A stretch of 64,000 bases of DNA from Bugula neritina (Eukaryota; Animalia; Bryozoa), in assembly GCA_964035545.1 (NCBI GenBank), contig OZ037768.1:9580741-9644740 (forward strand), written 5' to 3'. A program made the position numbers and the translations under genes. Positions 1 to 64,000 of the stretch are shown piece by piece. Within the stretch, counting starts at the first letter, position 1. Each line of letters begins with the position of its first letter. The notes beneath the pieces are model-generated. The model was not told the DNA's origin. It saw only the letters and a list, made by a program, of their open reading frames with translations, and did not search any database.

Positions 1-160
1 GTTGCTAAAGTCGACTTAAATTTGTGTGCTTAATATTTTCATATTTAATAATAGTTAAGATGTTTTTGTTGTTGTATGGTAACATGTACGTTTCACTGAG
101 GCACAAGTTGCATATACCTGTGAGTTTGATTTACATATAGTATCTAGTCTATACCTACAG

Positions 161-2091
161 ATGAGGGAGAAGTGTTTGGTTGGGGCAACTCCGAATACGG
201 TCAGTTTGACATTGTGACCCAGGATCCGCAACTTAACACCCCCACTCACCTTCCTATATCTTCTATATGTGGGAAAGTAGAGAAGGTGGCTGCAGCTGCC
301 ACTAATTGTGCAATTGTAAATGGTAAATTTTTCAAATCTGTAATTTTATAAGCTCATTTTATTTTTTATTGTCCATGTTGTGTTATTTTATTAACTTGTC
401 TTTTTTTTACTGTTATTCTTTGTTTTTGGTCATGTTTGCTGCTGCTAATTCTTTAAATTATTGAGTCTGTATATTCATCAGACATTATAGTGTTTAGCTT
501 TGAATATAAGATGAAACTCCTTCCAATACTATCACTAGCCAATACTGCTTGTGATGAAGTTTATATGTGATACAATTTAGTCATTACTACGGTGCTGGCC
601 TAATCTTGATTCATATTCACACACTGTGTTGCAGACAGAGGTGAAGTTTACGTCTGGGGCTATGGTGTACTGGGTAAAGGCCCCAAACTACAGCACTCAG
701 TAGAGCCAGAGTTGATTCCTATGACTCTATTTGGCATGAATACTTTCTCACAAGACAGCCGGGTGGAAAAAGTGTTCAGTGGAGTCAACTTTTTTGCTGC
801 AGTTACTAGTATGTTTTGTATATTTATTCTCTCATATCTTTCAGTCATTTAAAATTGTGGAAAGTAAATTGAGATATGAGTTTGTTAAATACTGGTTTAT
901 ACTTGAGACTCCAAAGAAATAAGTCACTCAATCCCATTAGTAGTTACCTGACTGGTGGTTGTCAAGTCAAAAAATTTAAAGCTAACTCAAGTTCAAGTGT
1001 CACCAGATTTGAAAGTCACATAAGCTGTATGTTGGCATTATATGTGTGTAAATATTCCTATATACACATTATATTTACTTATATCCTAGTAACAGTTGAA
1101 TAAAAAATGATTAGTAGAATAGAGTGCTTGAAGATTGTAGCTTGTAAGTTATAATTTTTTGAATGCCCTACTGAAACCTGACCGTATAGTTCCACCAATG
1201 GTAAATACGGAGAAAGTTTTAATGCCTGTTTAAGTCAGTTCTAATGAATTCTAGCTTGTTTTCAGCCATTTAAGTGCATTTTGTCACAAGATGCAAGTTT
1301 TTCTCAACTATACATGTAGAAGCAGTTTCTTCCTTCTTCACCATTATTGTTTAATAATCCATTTTTTCTGCCGTAGCAACTCTACATTCTGTTTCTAAAG
1401 ATATCACAACAATGTTTTGAAATCTGTTATTCTCCATAAAGCTGAGTCTCTTCTGACCAGTTTCAACCAATCACCACTTAGGATAATATTTATTTGCTAG
1501 ATTGACAAGCTAAAGTGTCATGTTTTCTACCCAAGCCTCCACTTAAACTATAAACCATCCTGTTTTGATTTTAAAAATGTTAGTCCAGGCTGTTGTATAT
1601 ACTTGAGTGCTCTGGTGTGTAGGTGTATGTCTTCGTGTCTGCAAGTTTTTGAAACAGATCACTAAACAGCAAAGAGGTTATGTTGCACAGCTTTTTGTAG
1701 ATACTAAAGCTCTTTATACTTGGGGGAAGAATGCCCACGGATGTCTTGGGCTCGGGCACAAAAATGTGCAGTATTTCCCTTTTATGGTATGTTGATTTTT
1801 TATACAACCTTGTACTAATCCAGAAAATGTCTTACCGTCAATCGTGTATAGAAGGTGATTTGTTTTGTAACTAAAAATTTAAAATAGATAAATCAGGCAT
1901 CACTATATTATGGTTTAAAATGCTTACTATGAATCAAATACACATTTGACTAAACTTCACTTTAAATGCAGCTACACTCTGTATCTGTTGAATAATTGGC
2001 CATTTTCTTGTAGGTTTCCGTAGGAAGTGAAGTAAATGACGTTGCGTGTGGTGCGGATCATGTGGTAACTCTCTGCCGCTCTTTTGTATAG
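161..2091 (+). CDS. RCC1L: RCC1-like G exchanging factor-like protein (RCC1L/WBSCR16), last four exons; 5' part lies outside the window
   Basis: Exons 161-322, 635-808, 1701-1786 and 2014-2091 (TAG) join in frame at GT-AG sites. They give RCC1 repeats EGEVFGWGNSEYGQ, GEVYVWGYGVLGKGP, LYTWGKNAHGCLGLG and VACGADHVVTLCRSFV*, matching the recalled RCC1L C-terminus (WGNSEY..., VWGYGILGKGP, WGKNIRGCLG, VACGVDHMVTLAKSFI). Confidence 0.93.
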
Positions 2092-3551
2092 ACAAATTTA
2101 CTATTTTATTCAGTTTGGAGATATTTTGCTGCTGATTTCATTGTACAAAGCTTCCAGCGCCAGGTTTTGGCATGGTTCAGGCGTATCATGCTTTTTATTG
2201 CGTTTGATTATATTTATTTATAACATGCCACCTGCGTTCAGAGTCTGTTGAGACTTCTTAAATTATGTAAATATTTTTTGTATGTACTTTCTTTTACTAA
2301 GTTTTTGTAAATGTTCTGAATGTTGTACTTTCTTTCAATATTATTGAGGCAATATAAACATTCAAAGTTACTAATTTAAGGCATAATTTGCTGTATGATA
2401 GTTATTAAAGTTATGCCTTGTTCATTGAAATGTTAATTAATGTGAATACTACTAAATTTGTAATTCGTTAAGACTACATTTCTTTTACCAAATCTATTTG
2501 ATCCCAACTATGAGTTTTCCCACTGACTTTTGTATATCACTACCTCCCCTCCCCTTGCATGGGGATAGTGTTAATCGACTGAAACCGCAACCATAAGATC
2601 ATGCAGTTTTTCATTTGATGTAATCCCGTACAGATCCATTTGATGTATGTGGACTTAGTGTACGTATTTTTTTTACCCATGACACGCTGGGGATTGCAAT
2701 AAAAATATATTTTATTAAAAAATTCATGCTTCTTGGAAAAAGGTAAGACAACTATGCACCATATAATAATTTGTGCAAACATTATGCTGCTTTGATATTT
2801 GCAACACAGCCTGTACTTTGAAAATTTGTAATCTGCATTGAATGCTTTAAAATATCTTAGCAAGTAACACAGGGCATTATGTCCCATTTTGGATTGAAAA
2901 TCATGCTTTTTAGATTTGCACAACAATCATCACCTGGTCACCTTTTGTGATGAAATTCAATCAAAGAGCATAAAGATGCATTGCATATTTACTCGTCTCC
3001 AGGGTGTTGCTCTTCTATTATTGCTGCAAAATAGAATGATTGTTTGAGGAGATGGTGGCAAGACCGCTTCTCAAGTTAACGCTGCAGCAGATGTATGCAA
3101 ACATCAAGTACAGGGTGGGTGTGCTCCAATCAATCAACTATCATTTGCCTGTGTGTCATTTTCAGTTTTCAATGTTTGTTACTGCCCAGTGGTATATATT
3201 ATAAAATCAATTATAAATTGTTGCCTTTGCTATAATTCCAAGACGGGACATCTGCCTCAAGCTTTTCTACTATTTGTTGATTGGCTGTATGGAAAGTGGC
3301 CGTGCGTCTTTGTTTACTAAGCATATCATTAGTGACAGGTGCTAATGGAGATGAACATAGGATGGCCTTTGTTATGCAGTGTGTGTTCTTTCAAACATAA
3401 TGAGAGCATCCTTATAAACCTGGGACAACACACATAGCTCACTTAACTCGTTATTAAATCAAGATATGGTTATATAGAGTTCACTAGTTGAATTTTTTTT
3501 TATTAAAGCTACATCAATTCTTACTACTGTTGGTCTCCGGAGGTAGTCAAA

Positions 3552-6500
3552 ATGTTTCCTCTCAGTCAGTATGAGGACCAACTGCGTTTGGCTTCACATG
3601 CTAAAGATGAAGGGTTCCAGTCTTTTAAGAAATGGGTACTTTCTACCTATGGTGACGGCTCAAAGACAAAGACAATATCTTGGTAAGACTGTTTACTTTT
3701 AATTAGTACCATTTATTAATTCAATATTTTCTGTTTATCACATTTATTTACATTCATGTATTTTAATTACTGTGTATTTTGGAAATTACATTATCAATCT
3801 GGTTGACCTATAAACTTGATGTATTTTAAGATTTCATTCTTGCAACTATAATATTTCTGACTGTTACATTTGCTTAAAGGTAAACGTGTTTTTGGCAGGT
3901 CTAAATATCTTAGAATTCATAAAGTTCTTAGTGGAAGGAGTCTTGGTGAAAGCCCAAAGTTTAAGTTTTGGGTGAAATCCAAAGGATTCTGTTTCTTGCC
4001 TTGTCCACAGAGGAACGGCTGGCCATCCGAGATGTCTGGCATGATTATTGCTTTACCTAATAAGGTGAGTTTCCTCTCCTTATTTATATAATTTAAGATA
4101 TAGAAACCCAATTATTTTAATTAAATCAACTGATAATTTTATATATTAACAAAAATGTTATAAATTTTTTGTTAAATTAAAACTTATTTAAATACTTTTT
4201 TTCTATATTTTATAGAAGACCTCGGTTGAGCGTGTCTATAAACGTGTGGCTGTTGTTGAAGAGTTCTTTAATATTATATATGACATCCACGTTAATATTA
4301 ATGGCCAGAATGGCAAACATGCTGGACAAAAGAGAACTTATAGAATGGTGAGACAACTCTTTTAAATATTGTATTTATTTGCATTAGCATACATGAAAAC
4401 TTTATTGTAAAATATAAATGTTATTGTTTCCATGCTATTTATAAACTGCTTCTTGCTTAAAATAAGTTTGACTGTTGTAATAAAATATTAAAGTTCATGT
4501 TGCACTTAGTATTAGTCATTGGATTTTAGTTGCGTATAAAATGTATGCATTGTTTTATAATAAACTATTGTGTATGCTTATTGCTCAGCTAATTCATGTG
4601 TGGAAAAATTTACAGATAATAGAGTCCTACGCGTTTTTACCCAGAGAAGCAGTGACTCACTTTCTAATGAATTGTAATGAATGTCGAAGTCGTATGCATC
4701 TGACTCCACCATCCCTGGGAGCAGACGTCTGCTGGAAAACCCGATCTAAACATTTGTCACCACTATCTGGCAGCCCGCTGTCACCCAGCAGATGCTCCTC
4801 TCCTACCCCCTCAGAAGTGTCTATAGATGTCGGCTGTGGATCAGTAAGTGTTTTAGTCTTGACAAATTTCTACAGGTAATAACCACCTGAATAATAAGGA
4901 AATTTATGTAGAGGTCAGCTACATAACCTCTTGCTTTTAGAAAACTTGGTTCACGCAAACATTCCTATGATACAAGGTTGTCCTAAACAAATTTTATGTT
5001 ATTATAACTGACAGTTATTAATATTATCATTGTTGGCTTTTTGCTGGTGAATTCTTCAGCCATTGGCTAATTTCGCTAGGCTGGCATAGGTTGGGATTTT
5101 CTCGACATGCGAGCTGATCCTAATTATTATTGTTACTACTATTGTTTGTTCCACGGCTTGAGTTAGGGTTGTTTCCTACCATCGAGCTAGTTCTGTTAGT
5201 TTGGGGTGGAGAGGACATTTTTCAAATGTTAGCTAATCCTAGCGGGGCTGGGAACTAGTCTATCCCAATTACTGTCCTGTAGCCAGGGAACCTTAAGCAA
5301 TATAGGGAGGGCTGCCTTCTGTATAGGCTTAGCCCACTTCAGTCAACTTCAATGCCAGATCCTGGTATAATTTTTATTTTTTCAACTTTTTTTTCAACTG
5401 GAAATTGTTATCATTATAGATGGTTGTTAATGCCTTATCAAAAATATTGTTAATTTTTCTGCAAAAGAAATAACTGAAAAGAAAATCACACATAGTATAC
5501 TCAGATTCACAACACACAATACACTAGGCAGCATGTTTTCACATGACAAGCACCTAAGCTGGCAGGCCTGGACATCGGCCTTAAGTTGCTAAAAGAATAT
5601 GTCTAAGTAATGGAGTGGAACAACCTGCTTTATAATGATATAAGGAAATAATTATGAAGCAAAACCTTTTGTCACCAATATCAGTTGTTTTAATAGAGCA
5701 ACTGACACATTGAAATTAACTACAAAAGTTTTATAAGCACAGAAAATAGGCTGTTGCATTTGTATAGCTGAATATTAGTTTTACAATACTTGAATCTAGT
5801 TGAACGTAAAAACTGAGAAACAAATTATAATGGTGATGGCAGTGGGTTATTTCTTATGATTGGTATACCAATCAGTTGGCAACAGGTAACAAAGCTCTTC
5901 GTGTTGGTGCTTTCATCAGTCAATCAATATGCAAATAGGTACCAGTATTCATACAGTAAGATCACTTGAGTAAAGTTACTGTACCTATGTTAAAACTGCT
6001 GTGAGCTATACCTTTATTCATCCGCAATGACATATTACTCTTTTTTTTGCACATTTGAGTGCAAGATGTTAAGATGTTAAATATAATATTAAGACCTCCT
6101 ACTTGTTCTCAAGTCCTAAACTGTACACTGCTTAAATTTTCAAGTGTTGTACATTATTGCTTTTGTGTTCATGTATTCGGGCATTCATAGAATAGGGTTA
6201 GAGTGACTGTAGAGTTGGTGAATCAATTGAGAAATATTCAAACAGTTGCAGTTGCCTTCGCACCATTACACACCCACAGTTTGGAGGATGCGTTTGCCAA
6301 TTTGATACAAAAGCATATTTAACACTTAGCTGTTCCCCAAAAGATTCAAGAGAGACTTATTTGAAGTGCATGAAAAAACCGATAAAAGAACAAAAAAAAC
6401 TTAATTTTCAATTGAAGGGGCTCAGCCATTAAAATGCAATATCAAAAGACATAGATAGTACCCATTTATTGATTTTAATCAAGTCAGCACTGCTGCTTTT

Positions 6501-15755: not shown

Positions 15756-18700
15756 GCAGTGACGATATACCATAAGGCTCCAGGCAGTAATTGATCCCAA
15801 TAAAACTACAAAAATTTACTTTTTAGTAACCCTTAAAACTGCAATATTCATTCATTGATCTGATTCATGTAGTAATTGTAGAGGTAGGTATCGTAATGGA
15901 GAATTGAGAAAAGCCAGCTTTTAGATGATGAATGTAGCAAAAGCAGTTATGGTTTTATGAGAGTTTCGCCCTTAGCACAAACCAAAATTCATTACAAAAG
16001 TTAAAGACCTTAGGCTATTGAAATGTTTGCACCTTTATGGGGCAATTGCTAAGAATAAAATTGTAGCTGTTGTATAATATCATAGTATCATTGTAAGGCT
16101 AAAGAGTCAGCTTCAATTCAGTATGTCAAAAGTTCATGCTGTAATTTTGGGACATAAACAGTTGAAGATCTACCTGTACATCCACAGTGTAAAAGCAGCG
16201 TTGTCTATGCTAATGAGAAATAAATGATGATTTTATATTCAGGGGTTTCAGCTAGAAGATAAACACCTGCGTTTCGGTGTTTTATTTAAACAAAAACAAT
16301 AGGCAACTATTATGCAGTTATATTACTCTATGTTGCTAAAAATATAGTTAACAGAGGTAGATTAAACTTAACTTTGAGGTATATCTATATATAAGCACCC
16401 ATGATGGTTTAAACCACTCGTAATCAGATTAAAAGGATAATTAATTTAAAACAAAACTATCATACTAGTACTATGCTTAGCTGCGTAAATTCAGCTGATT
16501 GAAGTAGACCACAATAATTGAAATATGCTTTAGTTTGCAGTTTTTACATCTATGGTTAGTGTTTCTGTTTTGAAGATATCAAGCTTTTATCCGAAATTTC
16601 AATAGAATGCAAAGGCTAAAATTTATTAATGCGATTGGTTTTTCAGCTTTCATCAATCAAGAAATATGATAATAGCCAATGGTGCCATCAAGTTTAAATA
16701 TCAAAAGTCTTTATCTTGTGTTGAAATGTTCACCAGGGTTTTGAAACAAAGTTCAAGTACAATAGATTAAAGCTAATTAACACAATACTGGTTATAAAGT
16801 TTTTTAACTGATAGCAGCGACATTAACAAAAGGTAGCTTCTAACATTTGACAACGTCTTAATTGTCATTTTCATGTTGTGGTTTTTCTTTCTCGTTCCAC
16901 AGGCCTGGTTTCTGTGCAGATAGATGGCAAGTTTGTAATCATACAAAACGATTTGTAGCAACTTTTTCTGGTTTCATATCCTTTTACTTAAGAGCTGGTA
17001 TAAGAGTTTCAAGCTGTTACTTAAATATGTTCCTAGTAACTTAACTTATATTTCCCTTTGTATGATGAAAGGGATAGATACTCAGAATTAGAGTGAAAAG
17101 GTAGGTTACTTCAGTGAAGAGCACCAAATCAGTAATAAACTATTTGGCAATTACTCAGCATCTGAAATGCTGGGTGTTAGAACAAAGTAAACTTTGCATC
17201 ATACCTTATATTCTATGCTAATAACAGGTTTTCTATCAGAGCAAAACCCACCAGCTTTAGAGTGTCATGTTAAGTATCCACTTTATAATCACATTTGTTT
17301 ATAAACTAGATGTTAGATAATGGAACAAGTTTTGCAGTTGAAACCCTTTAATTTCTTAGCAATTAGTTAATTAGGGTTGAAGTTGTTGCTTTTATATATA
17401 TGACTTGTGGGTGACACTATTTGACTCTTAACATCAATATTAACATCAATATAATGCTAAGAGCAAGGTAATAATATAATATTATTCTGACAATCAGCAG
17501 TAATGGTACATAAGGTTAATACACTTTATATAATAATAATTGAACAGCTATTTCCTTAAAAGGTAGTCCATCTCCTTTCCCATTTTTCTCTGAGTACTAT
17601 TGAGCTTGCAATATGATGCTTACCTTTATGCTAATACTACTAAACCTCTACTACAAGTAGAGGCAAAAGGAAGATTGCTATTTGAAGCTTGCCTGTTAGT
17701 ATTAGTGTTCAGAAAATTTTATTTTATAAAGTTTTTGTACAGGTTCCATCAAAGTTGTGAGTTGGCAGTCCAAAGTTGTACTGATTTTTACAGAAAATAG
17801 AAACAAACAATTGAAATCCGTGTATCATATCTATAATGATTGCTGTGACTTATTTTGGGAGAAATCATAACGAATCCTCAACGTATGTGGTATACAACAC
17901 ACCTGAACATTTCTCCTTGCAATTGATATAAAATTTGACGTGTTTAGGTAGCACATACATACTTGACACTTATTGTAAACTCACTAAGCGTTATAGATTA
18001 GCAAAAATATATACTGAAAAAGTTGAACTGAGAGTTTAAGGATTGAATGGTTAACTAGTTTATGTTCAAACTGACTAAATTTATCAACAAATAATTTATA
18101 CTGGTATTTTTACCATCGCTGTCATAGTCATTTTTTCGAGTTGATGTTGTTATTATTAAACCGTGTATCCAAGTAGTTCGAAAATCTATAAGCTTGTAAT
18201 TATCTTTAATGTTTCTCAAGTTGGAAAAATAGTTTTGTGTTAGAAAGTTTTCAAGGTAAATGAAAATTAGTTGCAGTTACTGCTATACTTGGCTTTAACA
18301 AAATTTGTTTACAAAATAAAATTTAACTGATTGTTTTACTTAGACTGAAATATTGCTAGCACACTAAGTTATATATAGAGGAGCTTTGTATTGTGTGAGA
18401 ACCAAGTTAATAGTTCTCCTGATCTATAAATAAGCAAATGTATTTATAGATAGATTGTATTATTTAGACTGTTGATTAAACAAATTTGCTGAATATTGTT
18501 CTACTACATTCCTAAATCCTAAAAAGAACCCCAGATCTTCAATAATTTACAGCTATTAAATAATTTAATGTAAAATAATGCATTATTTTAAATTAACTAT
18601 AATGGCAGAGTCTGCATCTGTTTATGCTCTAAGCAATCTATGTTTCTACTTGTATTTGTGCTTATAAATATTTTGTATTTTTGTTTGCTGGTTTAAGAAA

Positions 18701-47947: not shown

Positions 47948-48074
47948 TATATGTGCACTCGTCAGATAAATTTGCCACTATAGTGGCAAATTTATCTGAC
48001 GAGTGCACATGGTTTTTGTGTACGAAACTACTAGTAATAAATGCCATTATATTAATCAAATCTCATTTTATTTC

Positions 48075-48164
<90 letters not shown>

Positions 48165-48291
48165 AAGTAAAAAAAAATGATATATGCTGATAACAGAGGG
48201 GGCTCTGTTTATAGGCCCTCTATGGTATCGAAATATACCAAATGCATATAAGCCCCCTATGAGCAGCCCCCTATGAAACCACATTTAAGAA

Positions 48292-48338
<47 letters not shown>
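47906..48338. repeat. Three (TA)n tracts interleaved with two short unique segments, one beginning with a perfect 60-bp palindrome
   Basis: (TA)n at about 47906-47952, 48080-48162 and 48296-48338; palindrome at 47951-48010. Confidence 0.92.
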
Positions 48339-48341
<3 letters not shown>

Positions 48342-48908
48342 GAACGTTACGTCAAAAGTTATATATGGTTTAGAGATTTAGTATTACTTGAAAATTTTAT
48401 GTATATAATATTAGCAAAGTTAACCCAATTATTAAGTAAGCTCATTTTTTTGTCAAAATATATAAATATACACCTTATCCTCACCTACCTCCACTCTGTC
48501 ATCTGCTCTGTTCAAGTAGCAGGGAAAATATATAAATATACATATGCATGTATTTATACATATTATACACACATACACATGCATATATAGTATATTTTAT
48601 ATAATATATATAGTATATTTTATATAATATACACATGACATTACATATGAGCACGATATTATTTTTAGATAACCTGCATATTACTTTTTTCAAAAGCAAT
48701 ATAACTATATACTATGGAAACGCCGTGGTAGTGTATGCCTCCTCTTCACTACAGCTTTTAATTGACTGCTTTTTAAAAATTATGCTGTTAATATATCAAT
48801 CAAGCGATACTAGTCATAGTGTTGAAGAGTTATCTCCTTAATCGCACTATTCCGAAACGTTTTCCAAATAGCTACCCCATTAAATTTAGACTTCATAGTG
48901 GAACCGGA

Positions 48909-50933
<2,025 letters not shown>

Positions 50934-51052
50934 GAACCGGAGGGCGAGGCGTTTTGTTTGTTTGTCAGCGATAACAGAATCATTTTCATAGTGACTGATC
51001 TCCTGCAAAATTCATTACTTCACAAGTACTTGCTAAGTGTATCAACGACAAA

Positions 51053-54000
51053 ATGTCTACTGCGTTAGTTTTAAATTTCTTCGAAAGAAACAAAAACTGC
51101 TTTGCAATTTTTGGTGGAGTGGTGTCTTGTATTATAGGAGCAAAATTGTGCTTGCATATTTTGAAAGGAATTCGTTCATTCTTCTTAGCTCCTCTGTTGA
51201 AACTTGGTGTCAATCCCAAAACATTGGGCTCATGGGCTATTGTTACTGGTGCAACGGATGGAATAGGTAAATAAACTAGATGCAGATATTTTATTGTTAA
51301 CCTTGGTACTTTTTAAGCCGTTTATTTTTACTATTAAAATATTTGTTCACAGTTCAAAGTATGCACCCACAGCTTGTAGTTGTAGTTGTACTAGTAGTAG
51401 TTGTACATGTAGTTATACTTATTGTACTAGTAACGACCAGTAAGAGTATTGCTATGACTATGAATATATGATATTTTAAATGTGAATGAATGAATATGAT
51501 ACGTTAAATAATAAATTTAATCATTAATATTCTTATACTATTAGTATTACTAGTATAAGTATATCAAATTCAAAGTGTCATATTGTCAATGTAATTGTCA
51601 ATTAGTATTACTATTATTAATATTATAACTTTAAGTATTAGTTTAAGTATGAGTAGTACTAATAGTAATACTATTACTATTAGTATTAGTATTACTTTTA
51701 GAATTAGTATTACTGTTAGTAAGAATAATACTAAATTATCTAATAATATAAACATAGTTTATTAATTATTAGTTTGCCAGTTGCTAGCCAAGTAATGGAA
51801 GCTAGACCTGTACTGTATGCATAAAAATTTGTCGAGTTTGTATTTTAGTCAATGCAAAAACAAACTTAAGGAAAGCAAATAAAATTGAGTAGCTAAATTT
51901 ATTTTTTATAATCTGAAATGATAAATATATGCCTAATTATAATGAGCTGCAATTTGGAATGCTGTTGATATGATGAAATGTAATAAGTTGACTTGATATA
52001 TAGATAAAAAACACCATCATATAGTTGTGCAAAAGCCAATGGTCGTCGCAAACAACACATGGTGAGTGAACAAGCATTAAACTTCTAGACCCTAAAATTG
52101 AGATGAGAGACATTTTACACCATCAGTCACATTTTTCATTTGCATTATAATAGACTGTGAAGCACAATTTTAGCCCAGGTTATGATAATTAGAATGAGTT
52201 CTAGTGCTTACTATAGTTAACATGGATATTATTGCCATTGGTGCATTATTTTATGATAAGTTACTACGTCTTGCTTGCTCTTTAAATAAATTTGCTTGAA
52301 TAGGTACTAAAAGTTTTGTATGTGAAATCGTGATGGTTGATAACTTGCCAGGCTTTAAATAAAGTAGTGGTAGAATTGTAACTTTTGAGGCATGCTACAG
52401 TTATCTGAAAATTTTTAGTGCCAAGTATTTTTTATTATGGTGATGCAACTATTTTTTAGCTTCATCTAGTCTTAAATTTTTAACCTGAATAATTTTTGAA
52501 GTCCACAATTTTAGTTTTAAATTCTTCTTGCTTTTGTTTACTCTAATTTGAATTCAACTGGGACATTGTGAAATTGTCAATGAATACTTATAGCAATGCA
52601 TATAATGTATACTTACTGTGCTCCTAAATGCACCTAGTTGAAAAAAGAAACTTAACTCTTGATTTAAATAAAATAAAAAATATGGGGTTGGTAAAATTGG
52701 TAAAAAAATTTCAACAACTGGAAAACCTTTCAATTGTAAAGCATTTTAAAAGTAACAGGATTTGTATTTATTCTTAAACTTTAACTACCGTTCTATATTA
52801 ACAACCACTGACATTAACTAATTGCATTGATAAATCTTATATATTCACCGTGTTACAGAAAAGTAGTTCTCACCAACTACTTTGGTGAAAGTTCGCAAAC
52901 ACTCAGTTCATTAGATATTTTGCAGTATGTTCATAGCTTATGATTAGTATGGAATCAGGAGAGCTTTAAATTATACTATATTTATTATATAATACAATAT
53001 GAAATAAAAATAGGTATAATATTACCTGCATCTGTCAAAGCATGTGGTAGAAAACTTGTGTGGCAACAAACTGATTCTACTTATGTAATAAAATTGTTGT
53101 AAACGAAGTTTTTCTAGGGAAATCTTGAATAAAGCATAAGGCTGCTACTGCGACTAAGAATTTTCTAGAAAATAGATGATTTACTAATGCAACAGTTTAC
53201 AACATCACATTGATCATTACTTCAGTCTATGTCACGTATACACACAAGTAATGTGTGATATTGTACAGCTGTGTGACACACTAGCTATGTTTATAATATT
53301 GTGTACATTTTTAGCTAGGCTCAGATTTGGTTCAGTTAGTAAACCTGTGAAATGATGAAGTGTTTTTTTCTCACAGCAATAAAAATGCTAACACCACCAT
53401 TTTAAAATATTATGAAGCAACTTCGAAAATCTTAGCTTAAAAAATTGTCAATTCGCCAAGTTTAGACTTCAAACTTTCTTGCTTGTCAAATACACCCTAA
53501 GTTATGCTCATCTTGTCTAAATAAAATATAATTTCAAACACTTCTACATCTAAAGCTAAAGACAACAAAAACTCCATAATAATATTTCAACTTGTAAACC
53601 TAAAAAGTTTGCCTTTTTTCAGGTAAAGCCTATGCTATTGCCTTAGCGAAGAAGGGTATGAACATCGTGCTCATTAGTAGAACAGACAGTAAACTCACTG
53701 CTACTGCTGAGGAGATTAAGTCCATAGCTGAGGTGCGAACCAAATGTGTGTCAATTGATTTCTCCGAAGGCATTGAAATATACAAATCTATCGAGGATGC
53801 TTTAGAAGGGTTAGATATTGGAGTTCTTGTGAATAATGTCGGTGCTTCATACGACTACCCAGAATTCTTTCATCAGCTTCCTGACGGGTGAGTAGTTGAT
53901 AAATAAAACTACTGTGCTTTATTGTAGGGTTTTTAATGTACTAAACTGTTCACCGATAATATATGAAACATTACTTGTTGCCAATTCCATTAAAAATTAA

Positions 54001-54784
54001 AACTTATCATTACAACTATGGATGGTACTATACCATTTAACGATTATCTACGAAGCATTATTACTAATTCCATATAAAATTTAGTTGTTTCAAATTTTTT
54101 CTGCAGAAAGAACATGATGAAGAAAATTCTCAACATCAATATATTTTCTGTAACATACATGACATCCATTGTACTTCCCAAAATGGTGGACAAGCGTAAA
54201 GGTGCAATCGTGAATGTGGGATCAGCATCTTGTTTTGGATTTCCTCTCCTCACTGTCTACTCCGCTACTAAGGCCTATGTTCATTCTTTCTCTCAAAATC
54301 TTGCTGCAGAATATTCTGACAAAGGTATGTTGTAAATGTTATTAGATATTATAACAAATGAGGCTTTTGGTTGTTCACGCATAGGCATATTTATTTTACT
54401 TTAATAATGCTGGTACATTATTAAGTTCGAAAAATCAATCATTTAAAAAATAATTTAAGTTGCAGTTGATAATTAGTTGCTGGTGAAAAAGGTAGTGTTT
54501 TAATTTTAGGAATCATTGTTCAATCAGTATTCCCTCATCATGTTTCAACAAAGATGTCAAAAATGCGCCCATCATTTTCTTCTCCTACTGCTACTAAGTA
54601 TGCAAACTCGCTCCTCGCTACACTGGGAGTTGAAGCGGAGACTACTGGATGTTTTTCCCATTGGCTAATAGGTTCCTTTGCGCATGATCTTTTGTCCCGA
54701 AATTTGCTTTTCATAGGGGCTAAGTCCATGGCTTTAAATGTTAGATCGAGGGCTTTGAAAAGAAAAGCTGCTAAAAAAGAATAA
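51053..54784 (+). CDS. HSD17B12: Very-long-chain 3-oxoacyl-CoA reductase / 17-beta-HSD12-like SDR, isoform with proximal terminal exon 4a (about 323 aa)
   Basis: Exons 51053-51266, 53623-53887, 54107-54324 and 54510-54784. N-terminal hydrophobic segment, WAIVTGATDGIGKAYA (TGxxxGxG), NIVLISR, LDIGVLVNNVG, catalytic Ser and YSATK, Lys-rich tail RKAAKKE*. AATAAA at 54910 and 54943. Confidence 0.92.
51370..51775. repeat. TAG/TAT/TAC low-complexity tract at the start of HSD17B12 intron 1
   Basis: Directly visible degenerate trinucleotide repeats. Confidence 0.8.
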
Positions 54785-55240
54785 CTACATTTCCTATCTA
54801 CTAGATGTGTGAATTTGATTAGACTAGCTTGACTTTATATCACTATTGCTTATTTACTGTTATATTAGAAACATTTCATGATATTTGTTGTAACTTGTAA
54901 CTAAATTTGAATAAAACATTTTAGCATTCGTTTTTTATAATCAATAAAGTTATTAATTCATCAAAATATTGCTTTTTAATACAGCATTCTGTCAATGCAA
55001 GTTATATATTCATATTAATTTTAACTACTATAGTATTACAAAAATTAGAACCAAGAAGTCATTCTAAAGTTTCAACAATTGTTTCATTTGGTCAGATGGA
55101 ATAAAAAGGTAATTAAGTTGTCAATAGTAGATCATGGACATACAATTGCTACATGTTCACTGTAATGCATATTATGTGCAATACAAATTGTGCAGACAAA
55201 TCCTAATTTCATTTTAGTGTTGGTTATGTTACCCTTTCAG

Positions 55241-55524
55241 GTATTATCATACAGTCACTCATGCCAGGATTTATTACAACAAAACTTTCTGGAATCAAAA
55301 GATCTTCACTGTTTGTTCCCACACCAGATGTGTATGTAAATTGTGCCATTGAGAGTATTGGTAATGATTCTGCAACATATGGTTACTGGTCTCATAGCTT
55401 AATGATGTTATGCATCAGCTTAATTAAAATGATGCCGAGATCATTTTACTTGCCGAAGTATCTTAGAGCAATGGAGAATCAAGGCAAAATGAACAAGGAG
55501 AGGAAAGCAGCAAAGAAACAATGA
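55241..55524 (+). CDS. HSD17B12: Second, paralogous terminal exon (4b) of the HSD17B12-like gene; isoform about 326 aa
   Basis: Acceptor CCCTTTCAG|GT is in the same phase as exon 4a. Open frame GIIIQSLMPGFITTKLSGIKRSSLFVPTPDVYVNCAIESIG...TYGYWSHSLM...RKAAKKQ*; AATAAA at 55570. No copies of exons 1-3 lie between 4a and 4b. Confidence 0.85.
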
Positions 55525-55821
55525 TGCGAATGCATGGCTGCCCAACAATACAGAGTACTTTTATTTCATAATAAATTAATTTTGCTTAGACTATTTACTA
55601 GAAATACCTGCAATAAGAGAGTTTGGAAAAGCCTCTGATCTAGTTGGGAAACATTGCAGAATAAGTTATCCAAAATTTTCAATGAAGCTTTAAACCAAAA
55701 TCCATAGACAATTTAAGAATAGACTGATGCAAACTCTGTTTTGTACACTTGATGATTCACATTTTTAATTTGTAATTTTTTATTAAGGAAAATTAAATAC
55801 ATGTATGAATACAAAAATTTC

Positions 55822-57626
55822 TTATGAAGTGAAAAAACTCTTGAGTTTGTTTAATGCTCGTGCTCTATGAGATATGCTATTTTTCACAGATGGCTGCATT
55901 TCTGCAAATGTTTCATTAAAATCGTCTGGCTGAAAACATGGATCCCAGCCAAATTTTGTTGAACCTCTAGGACTAACTATCTTTCCCGGACATTTACCGC
56001 AAAACACAGATATGTCTTTTCCAGGTCCTTCAGAGTAACCAAATGTGCACATTGCATAAGCTGATTTATCCTCAAACCCGTGAAGCATGGTGTACAAACC
56101 TGAAAATTTAGCAATTGGCAACTTATAAAATGCACTTAAGGGAGTATTTTGGGATCTCTCTAAACTTTATAAATTTGCTTATAACTATTAACCACTCATA
56201 TCAGCAAATTAATTTAATATCATAAAAAATTGTTGGACTAACCAGTGTGTCTCTCTGTAAGAAGACATCAGTACATATACATAATTTGGTGTTTTTAGAT
56301 GATTTAAACTAGGGCGCAAACTCAATGGGGCACTTCCTTTGTAGTTTAAATCTAATTTTGTGACTAACCTAATGACTCAGTAATTAATTGTGAATTTCAA
56401 TAGCCAGATCAACAATAGCACTTTATTTTCTGGATTATCAGGTCCCCAGAACAATTGAGAGGCATGTGAAATATTGCAATTTTTAATGGTACAAATTCTA
56501 GTATAACTTCATAGCATGACAAATTGGTGGATTATGTATGGAGTAAAGCAATCACATTTTAAGGCCACACGAAAATTCCAATCTTGAGATAAATAAAAAT
56601 CTGCTTCTCTAAACCCAACATATGACTTAGATATAATTACCTAACTATTTTTAAAAAATTAAAAACAATTGATAATTGCTACTAGTAATGCAACAGTATA
56701 TCTTTATAAATTACAAACACTAGCAACCATTGAGTTTAAAATTTTTCTTGGTAGAAACATGTTATTGCACCAACAGTAATCTAGTTCTTAGAAACCTGAT
56801 AATCTGTTAAATTATGACTTGAATAATTTCAAAAACAGTTTTTAGTTTTTAAAATGATAATTACTAGGAATCTACAAATTTGCAACAGCTCATCTTGAAC
56901 AAAACCAAATTTATTAAGATAGCAATTGGAAACAGCGAAAAAGGGGGTGGGTAAAGATTAAGTTTTTGCATTTAGTAATAAATTCATCAATATCTTGTAA
57001 AGATTATCTTTCAATCTTGCCATATTTAATTAGGATGTATTTCCAGGGGATTTTTTTCAGATATGCTATGATGGGGGATTAGCCATTATGACTATTGTCA
57101 TCACTCAAAAAATGTTGAATAGTCCAAACTTCATAAAAATGAAAAATTGACAGTATGCCTGGTTTTAAATTTCCTCTGGGCTAATGCAAAATACTCACCC
57201 TCTGGTCCAATTTTTTCCAGAAACCATTTTATATAAGGTCCAGGCATGCCACCAAGAGCATTGAAACAAAGACAAGTGTCTTCTATAAGTACAGGACCTT
57301 GAACTATTTTTGCAGCTTCCTCACATTTCTGTCTAACAATTTCCTCTGGCTCACCTTGATATTCAGGCAGGTTCAGCTTTTTATTGACAAACTACGATAA
57401 TACCAATACTAAACTATAAATTGAACCAGATATTAAATGCATGGGCAGTGATGCTGTCAAAACTATACAGATGAGCCAGTGTGCCTTGTAGCTACTATAG
57501 TTTTGGCAACAGACACGTGAATAAAGACTAGCTGCTTTTACTCACATTTACCGAAGACCCAAGGATACTGGCAACTTCTTCCAATTTATTTTTGTTTCCT
57601 GTGACGAAGGTAATTACTCTGGACAT
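55822..57626 (-). CDS. ITPA: Inosine triphosphate pyrophosphatase (ITPA/HAM1), 3 coding exons, about 183 aa
   Basis: Exons 57626-57546, 57391-57199 and 56099-55822. Motifs [59 protein letters not shown] and KNSISHR. Confidence 0.96.
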
Positions 57627-60272: not shown

Positions 60273-63200
60273 TTATTTAATGTCACAAAGTAAGGCCACG
60301 CCTCTCAGTGTCCAGTGATCTGGATTTTGACTGGTTTTGAGATCCACAGGAGCAATGTAGGTGAGGTCTGTCCTCCTCGGCTTTTTGTATATTGGACACG
60401 AGTACATCTTGTCGTTGTGGCTACCGGTAGAGTTTATGGCGTAGATATGCACAACAGGCATCATCTCAAACAAAACCTGCAAGAGTAAAAGCTTATTGTT
60501 ATAACTTAACATGAATGCAGTTATTGTAAACTTTTATATTGTAATCTAGATGTATATTGATAGAACTGAAAGAACCTATTCTATATCCAACAAATTGTAA
60601 AGTTGTTTATTTTCTGTAGAATAAAATTAGAGTAAAATATTACTAGACTACCTAAAAAAGTAAAATATATTATTAAAAATATTATATGTGAAAAATATAG
60701 TCTGATGAACGTATATCAAACATCTCTTTTTGAAATAAGGCACAATTCATTGGCTGTTATACAATAGCTAATCTTTTGTCATCATATTTATACAACTATG
60801 GTTGAGGGAAGTATTATGATATAATAATGAGGCCAATAACTTTACATAATTACAGCAAGAAAAAGTTATTAGGTTGATTTAACTAGTTTTAACAGGTAAA
60901 AAAAGAATGTTACCAGACTGGTCTCAACATGAAGTATATGTTCGTTTAAATGTCACAAGAAATATTTACTCAATATTTACTGAGTGTTTGGTAATGAAGA
61001 CATAAAACTGTATTTTATACAAAACTAAAAAATATTTTTTTAGAATATTCCAAAGATAACTTGCACTTCATAAACATGTCAAATCTCTTATTATAATATG
61101 GCTCATCAAAATTCACTATCACTGATCTAGATAAAGCACTTTTTGATTACAATCTTAATAATCAACTTAGAAAACAATTAAATGTCCATAATTACTTTTA
61201 CAAAAAAAAGAAATGTGGAGAGTCACTAGTTCCAAGTGGTAGATTTTGAAAACAGTATTTTTAATGAAAACATTTTAAGAATTTCTATATAGTTCAAGCT
61301 GCAAACGGATATCTCATCAACTTACCTTTGGTTTAGGTTCTACAAGTCTCACTCCTTTCTTATCCCATCCGGCTCCTTCAAGGTACAGTCCGTAAACATA
61401 AACACCTTCAGCAGGTGGTTGTGTAGCGTCTTCCTTCATGTACTTCGTAACGTCATTGTGTAAAATGACAGTATCGAGTGCCCATCCTTTATGGGCCCGG
61501 GTCACTTCCTGCCTCATAGCTGTTAGGAACCCTGGTTATAACAAACACAAACAATGTTTAACACAAGAAGAAAGTGCTCAAATATAAACATTCTTTGACA
61601 GTTAGCACATATAGTTTCTTGCATTTAAGTGATAAACTATTAAAAAATACAGCTAAATAAGCGAGGATTTTTTCTAATTTTGCATGGTTTTTTATGTTTT
61701 AACCTATTGCATTAGTGGCTAAACTGTGAAAAATAGCAAAAAACTAAAGATATATAGTGTGTACTAAATTAAGTAGAATAACCCATTTATCATTTATCAA
61801 ATGTGTTACAAGAACACATGTAATAAATCGTGAATTTAATAAAAACAATAGAGTACTTAAAATTGAATCGAGAAATTTGTAATGAAATTCTAAAATAACT
61901 ATTAAATTTAGCCTTGTCTGCTTTGCCAATTCCGACTTATAATAAACTGCCTTTACCTTGAGGGTTGAAAAAGCCAGTCATCCAAAAGGAGATGGGTCTG
62001 CCCTCGAAGCACCATGTGCTAAACTGTGTGTTCCTTTCAATCAGATCAGTAAACCAGAACCCAAGGGTGGCCGACTCCCATGAAATCTGCAAGTCGAATA
62101 AGACATGTGCATATAATTCACCAGAAACATATGCGTATATACACTGTGACAGGAGAACAAGTTTCGACTAGTTACCTTGCTCCACGAGTTTGGCACTTTG
62201 CCATCGTACATGCAGTCGAGGGCATCTCTCAGATTCTCTGACATAATGATAGTCCCGTCAATAGCCAGTTTGAGGTCATTCAAAGTGAGTCTGACTAGCA
62301 TAATGACCTTCTGCATTCTATCTATCTCTTGCCTCAAGAAGATGTTCATCGGTTGAAGATGTCCCATTTTTTGAAGTCTCGTTTTTACCTATAGTTGGAA
62401 ATGCAAACATTAGAGTTGTTCAAAGTATTTATTTAGTCATGTAACTATCATTTATGCAACTACACAAATTAAAAGACATATTAACTTTTTAAAATATTGT
62501 ACATATTATACTATATATACTATTTGGTTGAATTTTACAATGTAAGATAATAGCTTAATTTATTTTTTATTTAAAGCTTAAAAATATATTCAAATATACA
62601 TTCGTGTATAATAAACATACATATGAACATATATTTTATATAACTTAAGCATGTTCTCGGTTGATTGGGTACATAATATATCTGTATAAATGCATAATAA
62701 ATCAGATGGAAAACTGACATGTGACAAAATACAAATCATGTATTCATATCATATGATTGATAAATTTACTTTTTAATTACATCTGATATGGCGGCATGTT
62801 ATTTACAGTAGCAAAAAATTAGTGTAAAGCAATTTGTTTAGTGATATTTTATGTGCATGTGTTGTATGTGTTCAGTATTTTATATATGTATATATTGTAT
62901 GTGTATATGTTGTGTATATATGTCGTGTATATATTATTTTGTACTTGCTGTATGTTTTATGTGTCTTCATTGCATGTATATTATGTTGTATGCAGAAGAC
63001 TTGGGGCACCTGTGACACATGCCTACCTCAAAAGGATCATAATCAGGGGGGAGCTTGTCAATCATGTCATCACAAAGTCTGTACACAACAGACTCTCTCG
63101 TCTCTCCTGAACCTCCACTTGAATCTTTAGGCTGAATACTTAGAATTGTGTCCAAGACATCACGGGCTGCTTTGGTCTGATATCTAGAACAATGGCAATT

Positions 63201-63816
63201 GCAATCTTAAACATACCATCTTCAACATATTTAATAGTATATATGCTTATAACATGCAAGACATGAGAGTAACTCTCCATTTTAAAAAACAAACTTTGTG
63301 AGTTTTAAAATGTTACCAAATTCTAATTGAAAACAATATATTAATAATAAACAAAAAATGTCTGTTATCATAAAGAAACTTCATGAAAGTGCAATTCAAA
63401 AATAAAAATAGAAATCACATTACAATATATTAGTATATAACTGTTATTGATATGTAAATATTAAGAAAATAATAAAAGTAGCTATTAGCTAAATTGCATG
63501 TATCATGGCATTAGGTTTGCCCAGTAAAAAGAGTTGGCAATAGACACACTTACGTTATGTCAGCATTAGGGTGAAGTCCAAAGGCCTGAGGTGTGTCAAT
63601 CAATGGCAGGTTGTTGATGGCAGTAAAGTACTCGTCAATCTTGTTGCACTTGGGTATTGGATAACCTTTGTAGAATGCGAAAGAGTTGGGGAACATGTGC
63701 TCACCAAACCAAACTCGACAGAACGTAATGAGTAGCCTTTTGTCATAGTCATCTGTAACTCGTCCGCCATATTGGATTTCTCCAAACATGTACCGAACAG
63801 TACTCCAACTAACGCC
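60273..63816 (-). CDS. DNAH5: Axonemal outer-arm dynein heavy chain, DNAH5/DNAH8 type, last six exons; gene continues beyond the window
   Basis: Exons 63816-63554, 63183-63027, 62388-62176, 62086-61957, 61531-61326 and 60476-60273 join in frame. Motifs [84 protein letters not shown] and [18 protein letters not shown]5 and DNAH8 cannot be told apart from this fragment. Confidence 0.95.
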
Positions 63817-64000
63817 CTGTTAACAAGCGAATTCAATGCTATATGTAATGGTGATGCCATTTCAATGTTTTACAGCTATAGAAGTACAAGTAGTCCTATA
63901 TTAAATTTATCTGTTTTCTGTAGATTGATAGCTCAAGCGATAATTACATTTTATAATTTACAGCTACTTGCATAGTATTTTACTATGCAAGTTGCTAAAT

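Follow-up and report, generated by a model that had tools for sequence, protein, structure and literature searches.

A reductase gene of the bryozoan Bugula neritina with two homologous terminal exons, probably alternative ends of one enzyme

How many enzymes can a single reductase gene encode when it is followed by two versions of its own last exon? The question is raised by a stretch of 64,000 nucleotides of Bugula neritina DNA (GCA_964035545.1, contig OZ037768.1, 9,580,741-9,644,740; this whole stretch is the window, and window positions are used throughout), in which a predicted ketoacyl reductase gene on the + strand ends in two homologous terminal exons, 4a and 4b. The original prediction, made from the letters of the window, held that a choice of last exon and poly(A) site swaps the substrate-binding module on a shared catalytic core, giving two enzymes from one gene. 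We find it fairly likely that a tandem exon duplication gave rise to alternative last exons, that both have been maintained by selection across bryozoans, and that they provide a canonical and a bryozoan-specific form of the very-long-chain 3-oxoacyl-CoA reductase (KAR). The assembly holds 216,009,554 bases, the published genome of the species being given as 216.00 Mb (PMC11480708), and the window is AT-rich eukaryotic DNA.

The gene consists of exons 1 to 3 (e1-e3) followed by the two terminal exons, and all its splice sites are canonical GT-AG. Its parts are as follows.

Exon 1: 51053-51266, + strand; start codon, N-terminal hydrophobic helix and first part of the TGxxxGxG motif; donor G/gtaaat, phase 1.
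Exon 2: 53623-53887, + strand; core of the Rossmann fold with NNVG; Pfam adh_short, E 1e-8; joined precisely to e3 in L031, a contig described below.
Exon 3: 54107-54324, + strand; catalytic Ser and YxxxK; Pfam adh_short, E 9e-17.
Intron 3: 54325-54509, + strand; 185 nt, ending in the 4a acceptor ttttag; missing from the spliced contig L031.
Terminal exon 4a: 54510-54784, + strand; a-type, canonical tail with betaF, loop, three helices, lysine-rich end and TAA.
3' untranslated region of 4a: 54785-54975, + strand; AATAAA at 54910 and 54943.
Spacer: 54976-55240, + strand; runs from the 4a poly(A) region up to 4b, with the 4b acceptor ccctttcag at its end; would be intron if 4b were used.
Terminal exon 4b: 55241-55524, + strand; b-type, bryozoan-specific duplicate with the same layout as 4a, invariant PG and GYW, lysine-rich end and TGA.
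Putative 3' untranslated region of 4b: 55525-55600, + strand; AATAAA at 55570.

The donor of e3 (AAAG/gtatgt at 54324/54325, phase 1) is common to both terminal exons. Exon 4a is entered through ttttag/G at 54509/54510 and is open from 54512 to 54781 (90 codons, then TAA), and exon 4b is entered through tttcag/G at 55240/55241 and is open from 55243 to 55521 (93 codons, then TGA), both acceptors being in phase 1; the reading of two open terminal exons with same-phase AG acceptors and stops of their own was therefore correct. Because each exon has its own stop, 4a and 4b are mutually exclusive in protein. Their identity, which had been put by eye at about one-third, is 32% over the full length (tblastn E 2.5e-8; genome-wide search E 2e-3). 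The cofactor and catalytic motifs had been assigned to the first three exons and do lie there: TGATDGIGK straddles the e1/e2 junction, NNVG is in e2, and GSAS and YSATK are in e3, the latter two being invariant in an alignment of 38 sequences, and Pfam adh_short matches e2 and e3 only. A similarity search of the window detected no copy of e1-e3-like sequence, neither between 4a and 4b, as predicted, nor elsewhere. Recent gene conversion between the common RKAAKK tails was considered and, on inspection by eye, dismissed, since their codons are not alike at synonymous positions. Just upstream of the reductase gene and inside its intron 1, the DNA is very AT-rich (GC 17-22% in window 48000-52000), with long (TA)n-like and other simple repeats.

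By sequence comparison, the gene is the single Bugula neritina orthologue of the very-long-chain 3-oxoacyl-CoA reductase (KAR/HSD17B12) of the endoplasmic reticulum, in agreement with the family assignment made at the outset. The spliced partial product of a sibling lineage matches animal KAR/HSD17B12 enzymes at 50-53% identity and that of the bryozoan Watersipora subatra, the nearest, at 63%; among the best 120 of 1620 matches none exceeds this value, and almost all of those that bear a name are called very-long-chain 3-oxoacyl-CoA reductase or 17beta-HSD12. Exon 1 and its Watersipora counterpart share 55% identity. Exon 1 encodes a hydrophobic N-terminus, and residues 2-47 of the Watersipora protein form one long helix in an AlphaFold model. 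In the tails of both 4a and 4b a single residue follows the final KK, which misses a strict KKXX by one position, and several orthologous modules of other species do end in KKXX. Like vertebrate HSD17B12 and yeast IFA38, the Bugula gene would thus encode an N-terminal membrane helix, an SDR core (TGxxxGxG, NNxG, S...YxxxK) and a lysine-rich tail, and the predicted activity of its product, by orthology, is the reduction of 3-ketoacyl-CoA in fatty-acid elongation.

Among the related reductase genes of the Bugula genome, only the KAR orthologue has its last exon doubled. Five more distant SDR paralogues, namely tandem pairs at C4:8.215 and 8.223 Mb and at C5:4.770 and 4.779 Mb and a singleton at C5:4.074 Mb, have the same four-exon layout, each with a single terminal exon and none with a lysine-rich tail; they are 41-53% identical to the KAR gene in e2/e3, and their tails have diverged. 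Two intronless reductase-like copies on the - strand (C312:4036-4851 and C180, positions 5474-6288 of the extracted locus) are colinear with the gene over e1-e4 and carry several stops; they are probably processed pseudogenes.

Is the tandem arrangement real, or could 4b belong to another gene? An 87-codon open reading frame (ORF) starting at the internal ATG 55261 does exist in 4b, of the kind that prokaryote-style gene callers report, and an 87-residue ORF of this sort (P0001), 97% identical to 4b, led us to four contigs, independent of one another, from a sibling lineage of B. neritina; an exact look-up of the window's own 87-residue ORF returned no record. Either 4b could be a free-standing small gene, or it could be the end of a separate gene whose 5' exons were collapsed in the assembly. 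Both versions run against the layout seen elsewhere. The four sibling contigs (L028-L031; two come from JGI metagenomes, the others from the Logan assemblies of SRR4020084 and SRR4020085), whose lineage differs from that of the window by about 7-8% in non-coding DNA, all show the order e3-4a-4b, and the spacing of 4a and 4b is the same in these contigs, in two other species and in a chromosome-level assembly of Watersipora. Between or after the two exons there is no e1-e3-like sequence, and the next neighbour is the 3' end of a convergent gene for ITPA (Ham1-like inosine triphosphatase), which lies about 300 nt past 4b (exon at 55822-56121, - strand, with more exons to about 57400). Finally, the six codons before the internal ATG are conserved as betaF and preceded by a conserved AG acceptor in every species, both of which a free ORF would not need. 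We regard a separate or free-standing 4b gene as very improbable, and assembly collapse, against which the recurrence of the layout in independent assemblies and species speaks, is excluded for practical purposes.

How old, then, is the duplication? Other b-type ORFs led to contigs of further species, bryozoan by similarity and with one sample bearing the label BRYA: one (L034) holds 4a and then 4b about 720 nt apart, another (L035) holds e2, e3, 4a and 4b, and four short ones (L033, L036-L038) hold only a b-type exon. The Watersipora subatra locus (L032, OY755160.1, chromosome-level) contains e1-e3, an a-type module (m1) and two b-type modules (m2 and m3, at L032:10349-10630 and 17435-17710). 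The last of these, m3, is found 7 kb further downstream, within the stretch covered by the ITPA gene and on the opposite strand to it, so that even the convergent neighbour is conserved. Across species, each module has an open frame, an AG acceptor at the same phase and a lysine-rich tail. Bryozoans of at least four taxa have kept this tandem layout. When 24 modules were placed in a maximum-likelihood tree, all eight of b-type fell into a single clade (support 92/82; one change in 100% of bootstrap trees), and those of a-type grouped with the canonical enzyme tails of vertebrates and of brachiopods, annelids, echinoderms, hemichordates and rotifers; a topology that unites a-type and b-type modules in one bryozoan clade is not rejected (p-AU 0.19). 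The tail of the Lingula enzyme is 52% identical to Bugula 4a and 37% to 4b, and 4a also groups with the Owenia tail. By this grouping with tails of other phyla and the higher identity to Lingula, 4a is the ancestral tail. The b-type module goes back to a duplication of the last exon that had taken place by the time of the ancestor shared by Bugula and Watersipora, which we take, by estimate, to have lived more than 100 million years ago.

Have both copies been kept by selection since then? In cross-species comparisons of both a-type and b-type modules, synonymous divergence (pS) is 0.59-0.93, saturated or nearly so, against a nonsynonymous divergence (pN) of 0.21-0.39; both modules have therefore long been kept coding, and the duplication looks as old, and its two copies as constrained, as the original prediction supposed. 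Over a shorter time, the two B. neritina lineages can be compared, with small counts of changes.

Core, e2 and e3: 3 nonsynonymous and 14 synonymous changes; omega 0.06; identity 96.6-96.8%.
Exon 4b: 3 nonsynonymous and 4 synonymous changes; omega 0.18; identity 97.5%, protein 97%.
Exon 4a (window 54510-54784 against L031:486-760): 6 nonsynonymous and 2 synonymous changes; omega 0.96; identity 97.1%.
Introns and spacer: identity 92-94% between lineages (intron 3, 92.4%; spacer, 94-95%).

Neutral evolution of exon 4b, under which about 5.6 nonsynonymous and 1.4 synonymous changes would be expected in place of the 3 and 4 observed, is thus not what we find (binomial p 0.035), and 4a differs from the core (Fisher p 0.01). 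These counts make it clear that 4b is not the copy under weaker constraint. Of the six amino-acid changes in 4a, three or more are derived in the sequenced lineage, as judged from other species, and one of them is the loss of a nearly invariant proline of the family (LLSRN in the window, LLPRN elsewhere). This loss, with 4b conserved, is a hint that the two forms have not yet reached a settled balance. The b-type modules have invariant residues of their own: PG after betaF, where the other type has PH or PF; GYW, where it has GC(F/L) or GYF; and, at the place of xG in other tails, a hydrophobic MM/ML pair.

These results suggest the following path. The last exon would have been duplicated in tandem in an early bryozoan. 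Exons e1-e3 would supply the membrane anchor, the NADPH-binding fold and the catalytic Ser/YxxxK, and the phase-1 donor of e3 could be joined to either acceptor. Use of the 4a acceptor, with cleavage and polyadenylation about 130-190 nt past the stop, would give the canonical enzyme; skipping of 4a and its poly(A) site and use of the 4b acceptor would give a protein with a different C-terminal third (betaF, the loop after PG and three helices). The choice may be set by competition between splicing and polyadenylation. Duplexes formed by intronic sequences might have been thought to loop out 4a; only short AT-rich inverted repeats were found (10-17 nt, 79-100% complementarity), which we judge to be at chance level at 32% GC. 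Two pairs of inverted repeats, of 15-17 nt and 82-87% complementary, join the 4a acceptor to the spacer (54497-54513/55035-55051) and the e3 donor to the start of 4b (54321-54335/55274-55288), and are probably also due to chance. A scan of the spacer for bacterial promoters and terminators was uninformative.

Which of these joints are seen in transcripts? One sibling contig (L031; SRR4020085_70037, 1-3319, corresponding to window 53621-57391) has introns 2 and 3 precisely removed and is otherwise 100% identical to genomic contigs of the same lineage. It begins exactly at the e2 acceptor, the point where spliced and unspliced paths would branch, and reads e2-e3-4a in frame to the 4a stop with joins precisely at the predicted sites; this proves that e3 is joined to 4a in the sibling lineage. 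Past 4a, the contig follows the genome colinearly across the spacer, 4b and an ITPA intron of about 1 kb that it retains. Its source is either RNA, nascent or depleted of poly(A), or a rare allele without introns. In a B. neritina study of the same period, DNA was sequenced alongside RNA from which rRNA and poly(A) RNA had been removed (PMC5041132). RNA of that kind would yield just such a mix of spliced and nascent transcripts. In Watersipora, one RefSeq protein (XP_067934952.1, X2) joins e3 to the a-type m1 and another, an automatic model (XP_067934951.1, X1), joins e3 to the b-type m2. X1 departs from m2 through an internal AG/GTATTT donor; m3 is then entered at its usual acceptor but read in a shifted frame, for 83 residues. 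X1 is probably mis-modelled, and it does record a join made by the annotation pipeline between e3 and a b-type acceptor. The Watersipora annotation contains neither e3-m2 nor e3-m3 as an in-frame product.

We infer splicing of e3 to 4b from the conserved frame, acceptor and phase of 4b and from this flawed Watersipora model, and several observations weigh against its use in Bugula: (i), no e3-4b junction was found in the contigs or in protein searches, the exon 4b query returning only P0001, which is a genomic ORF. (ii), L031 is unbroken through the 4b acceptor, which suggests that joining of e3 to 4b is at most minor in that sample. (iii), X1 gives weak support for b-type use, given the internal donor in m2 and the shifted frame in m3. 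(iv), the branch of Bugula 4b (1.35 changes per column) is the longest of the b-type clade and, (v) the only canonical AATAAA near the 4b stop, at 55570, sits in a 33-nt indel (window 55567-55599) that is absent from the sibling lineage, so that this signal is not conserved. Each exon had been credited with an AATAAA of its own; in the window this holds for both, and in the sibling lineage it fails for 4b. Downstream of the a-type stop, by comparison, an AATAAA lies at 126-158 nt in 4/4 species that could be checked, and the 3' untranslated region of 4a is 97.1% identical between the B. neritina lineages; the poly(A) signals of b-type modules differ from species to species. When the b-type part of X1 was used as a protein query it matched only itself, and a representative library gave only unspliced, exon-sized b-type ORFs. 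The blank for spliced b-type proteins says little, however, because spliced a-type bryozoan proteins are likewise absent, apart from the two Watersipora RefSeq models.

As the main rival reading, one could argue that only 4a is used in Bugula neritina and that 4b is a silent relic whose frame has stayed open after its splicing ceased, and which was perhaps functional in other bryozoans, a view to which the missing junction, the unspliced 4b acceptor of L031, the long branch and the lost AATAAA all lend themselves. We consider it unlikely: both B. neritina lineages retain an undamaged 4b frame and acceptor, the changes in 4b depart from the neutral expectation, the exon is more similar between lineages than the non-coding DNA that flanks it, the b-type residues PG, GYW and MM are kept, and a relic of 93 codons would not be expected to have stayed open at saturated synonymous divergence. 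We therefore return to the reading of two selected alternative last exons. The proposal that one gene gives two enzymes by choice of last exon stands as far as the single gene, the common core and the splicing of e3 to 4a are concerned, while the use of 4b is deduced from conservation; as judged from the sequences, the gene probably does encode two enzyme forms.

If two forms are made, in what would they differ? The swapped module can be placed on an AlphaFold model of the Watersipora a-type protein, built on the 38-sequence alignment (pLDDT 93.8), in which it comprises betaF (232-237), a loop and helices at 258-267, 279-291 and 294-320. Relatives in the PDB align only to about residue 250, just after betaF, and there is no close solved structure of the family. 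In classical SDR enzymes the region after betaF shapes and lines the substrate site, and a swap of substrate range is for this reason a reasonable suggestion from the model. The module reaches from betaF to the C-terminus, however, and could equally alter partner binding or membrane association. In a competing account, both exons are used and the swap changes contacts of the C-terminal helices (with the ELOVL, HACD or TECR partners, with the membrane, or in retention in the endoplasmic reticulum and turnover) rather than the choice of substrate. As placed on the model, the divergence between a- and b-type modules is greatest in the last 40 residues, that is, in the two long C-terminal helices and the lysine-rich tail, betaF and the first loop being much more alike, which would suit such an account; residues invariant within each type nevertheless also occur early (PG versus PH/PF, GYW versus GC(F/L)/GYF), in the substrate-side region that follows betaF. 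We see the contact account as possible and somewhat unlikely. For the alternative last exons as such, the two forms would be expected to differ in function, whether by their substrate range or by the partners they meet in the elongase complex. A fuller scenario, in which KAR has had two modules (three in Watersipora) since the Bugula-Watersipora ancestor and a regulated choice between them provides differing substrate ranges or elongase partners, is tentative, and we would place it somewhat short of an even chance.

Is there a precedent for such a gene? Annotated animal HSD17B12/KAR enzymes resemble the Bugula product at 50-53% identity, and their tails align with 4a along its whole length. 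Unlike them, the Bugula gene has two homologous alternative C-terminal exons, an arrangement that the original prediction took to be undescribed and for which we found no description in the literature on HSD17B12/KAR. The shorter HSD17B12 isoforms of vertebrates look like truncations, judged by their lengths only. A close parallel is Watersipora subatra, with an orthologous gene, the same exon structure, the same ITPA neighbour and models in which e3 is joined to an a-type (X2) or a b-type (X1) module; it differs in having three modules, and no paper describing X1 was found. Outside the family, the Anopheles gambiae gene aggst1-alpha/GSTD1 reportedly combines common 5' exons for cofactor binding with tandem-duplicated 3' exons that encode alternative substrate-binding C-terminal parts. 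Alternatively spliced glutathione S-transferase (GST) genes are also known from Drosophila, for example GSTO2 and GSTD11 (PMC4195677). The insect GST genes differ from the Bugula gene in fold and chemistry, and transcripts and enzyme properties were measured there, compared with one of two junctions seen here. The principle of a common cofactor core with alternative substrate-side exons is thus already known from insect GSTs. As for mechanism, in the calcitonin/CGRP gene and in the choice between membrane and secreted IgM, a proximal terminal exon with its poly(A) site competes with splicing to a distal exon. The mechanism proposed for Bugula is alike, but the terminal exons of those genes are unrelated in sequence, whereas those of Bugula are homologous copies that would replace the same elements. 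On the side, exon-sized ORFs resembling the C-terminal part of a dynein heavy chain occupy window 60273-63975 (- strand), beyond the ITPA gene.

KAR is essential in the elongation of very-long-chain fatty acids and is usually treated as a single form, the choice of substrate being ascribed to the ELOVL condensing enzymes. If our reading is true, the reductase step could also be diversified. Under the fuller, tentative scenario, bryozoans would have a route at the level of splicing to the kind of lipid (or steroid) diversity for which other animals rely on duplicated genes. The locus flags a probably mis-modelled Watersipora RefSeq isoform (XP_067934951.1), and it offers a clean and dated example of the passage from exon duplication to alternative last exons in a little-studied phylum. 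The two modules would moreover constitute a natural domain swap for mapping the determinants of chain-length, steroid or partner specificity in a membrane enzyme whose structure is unsolved.

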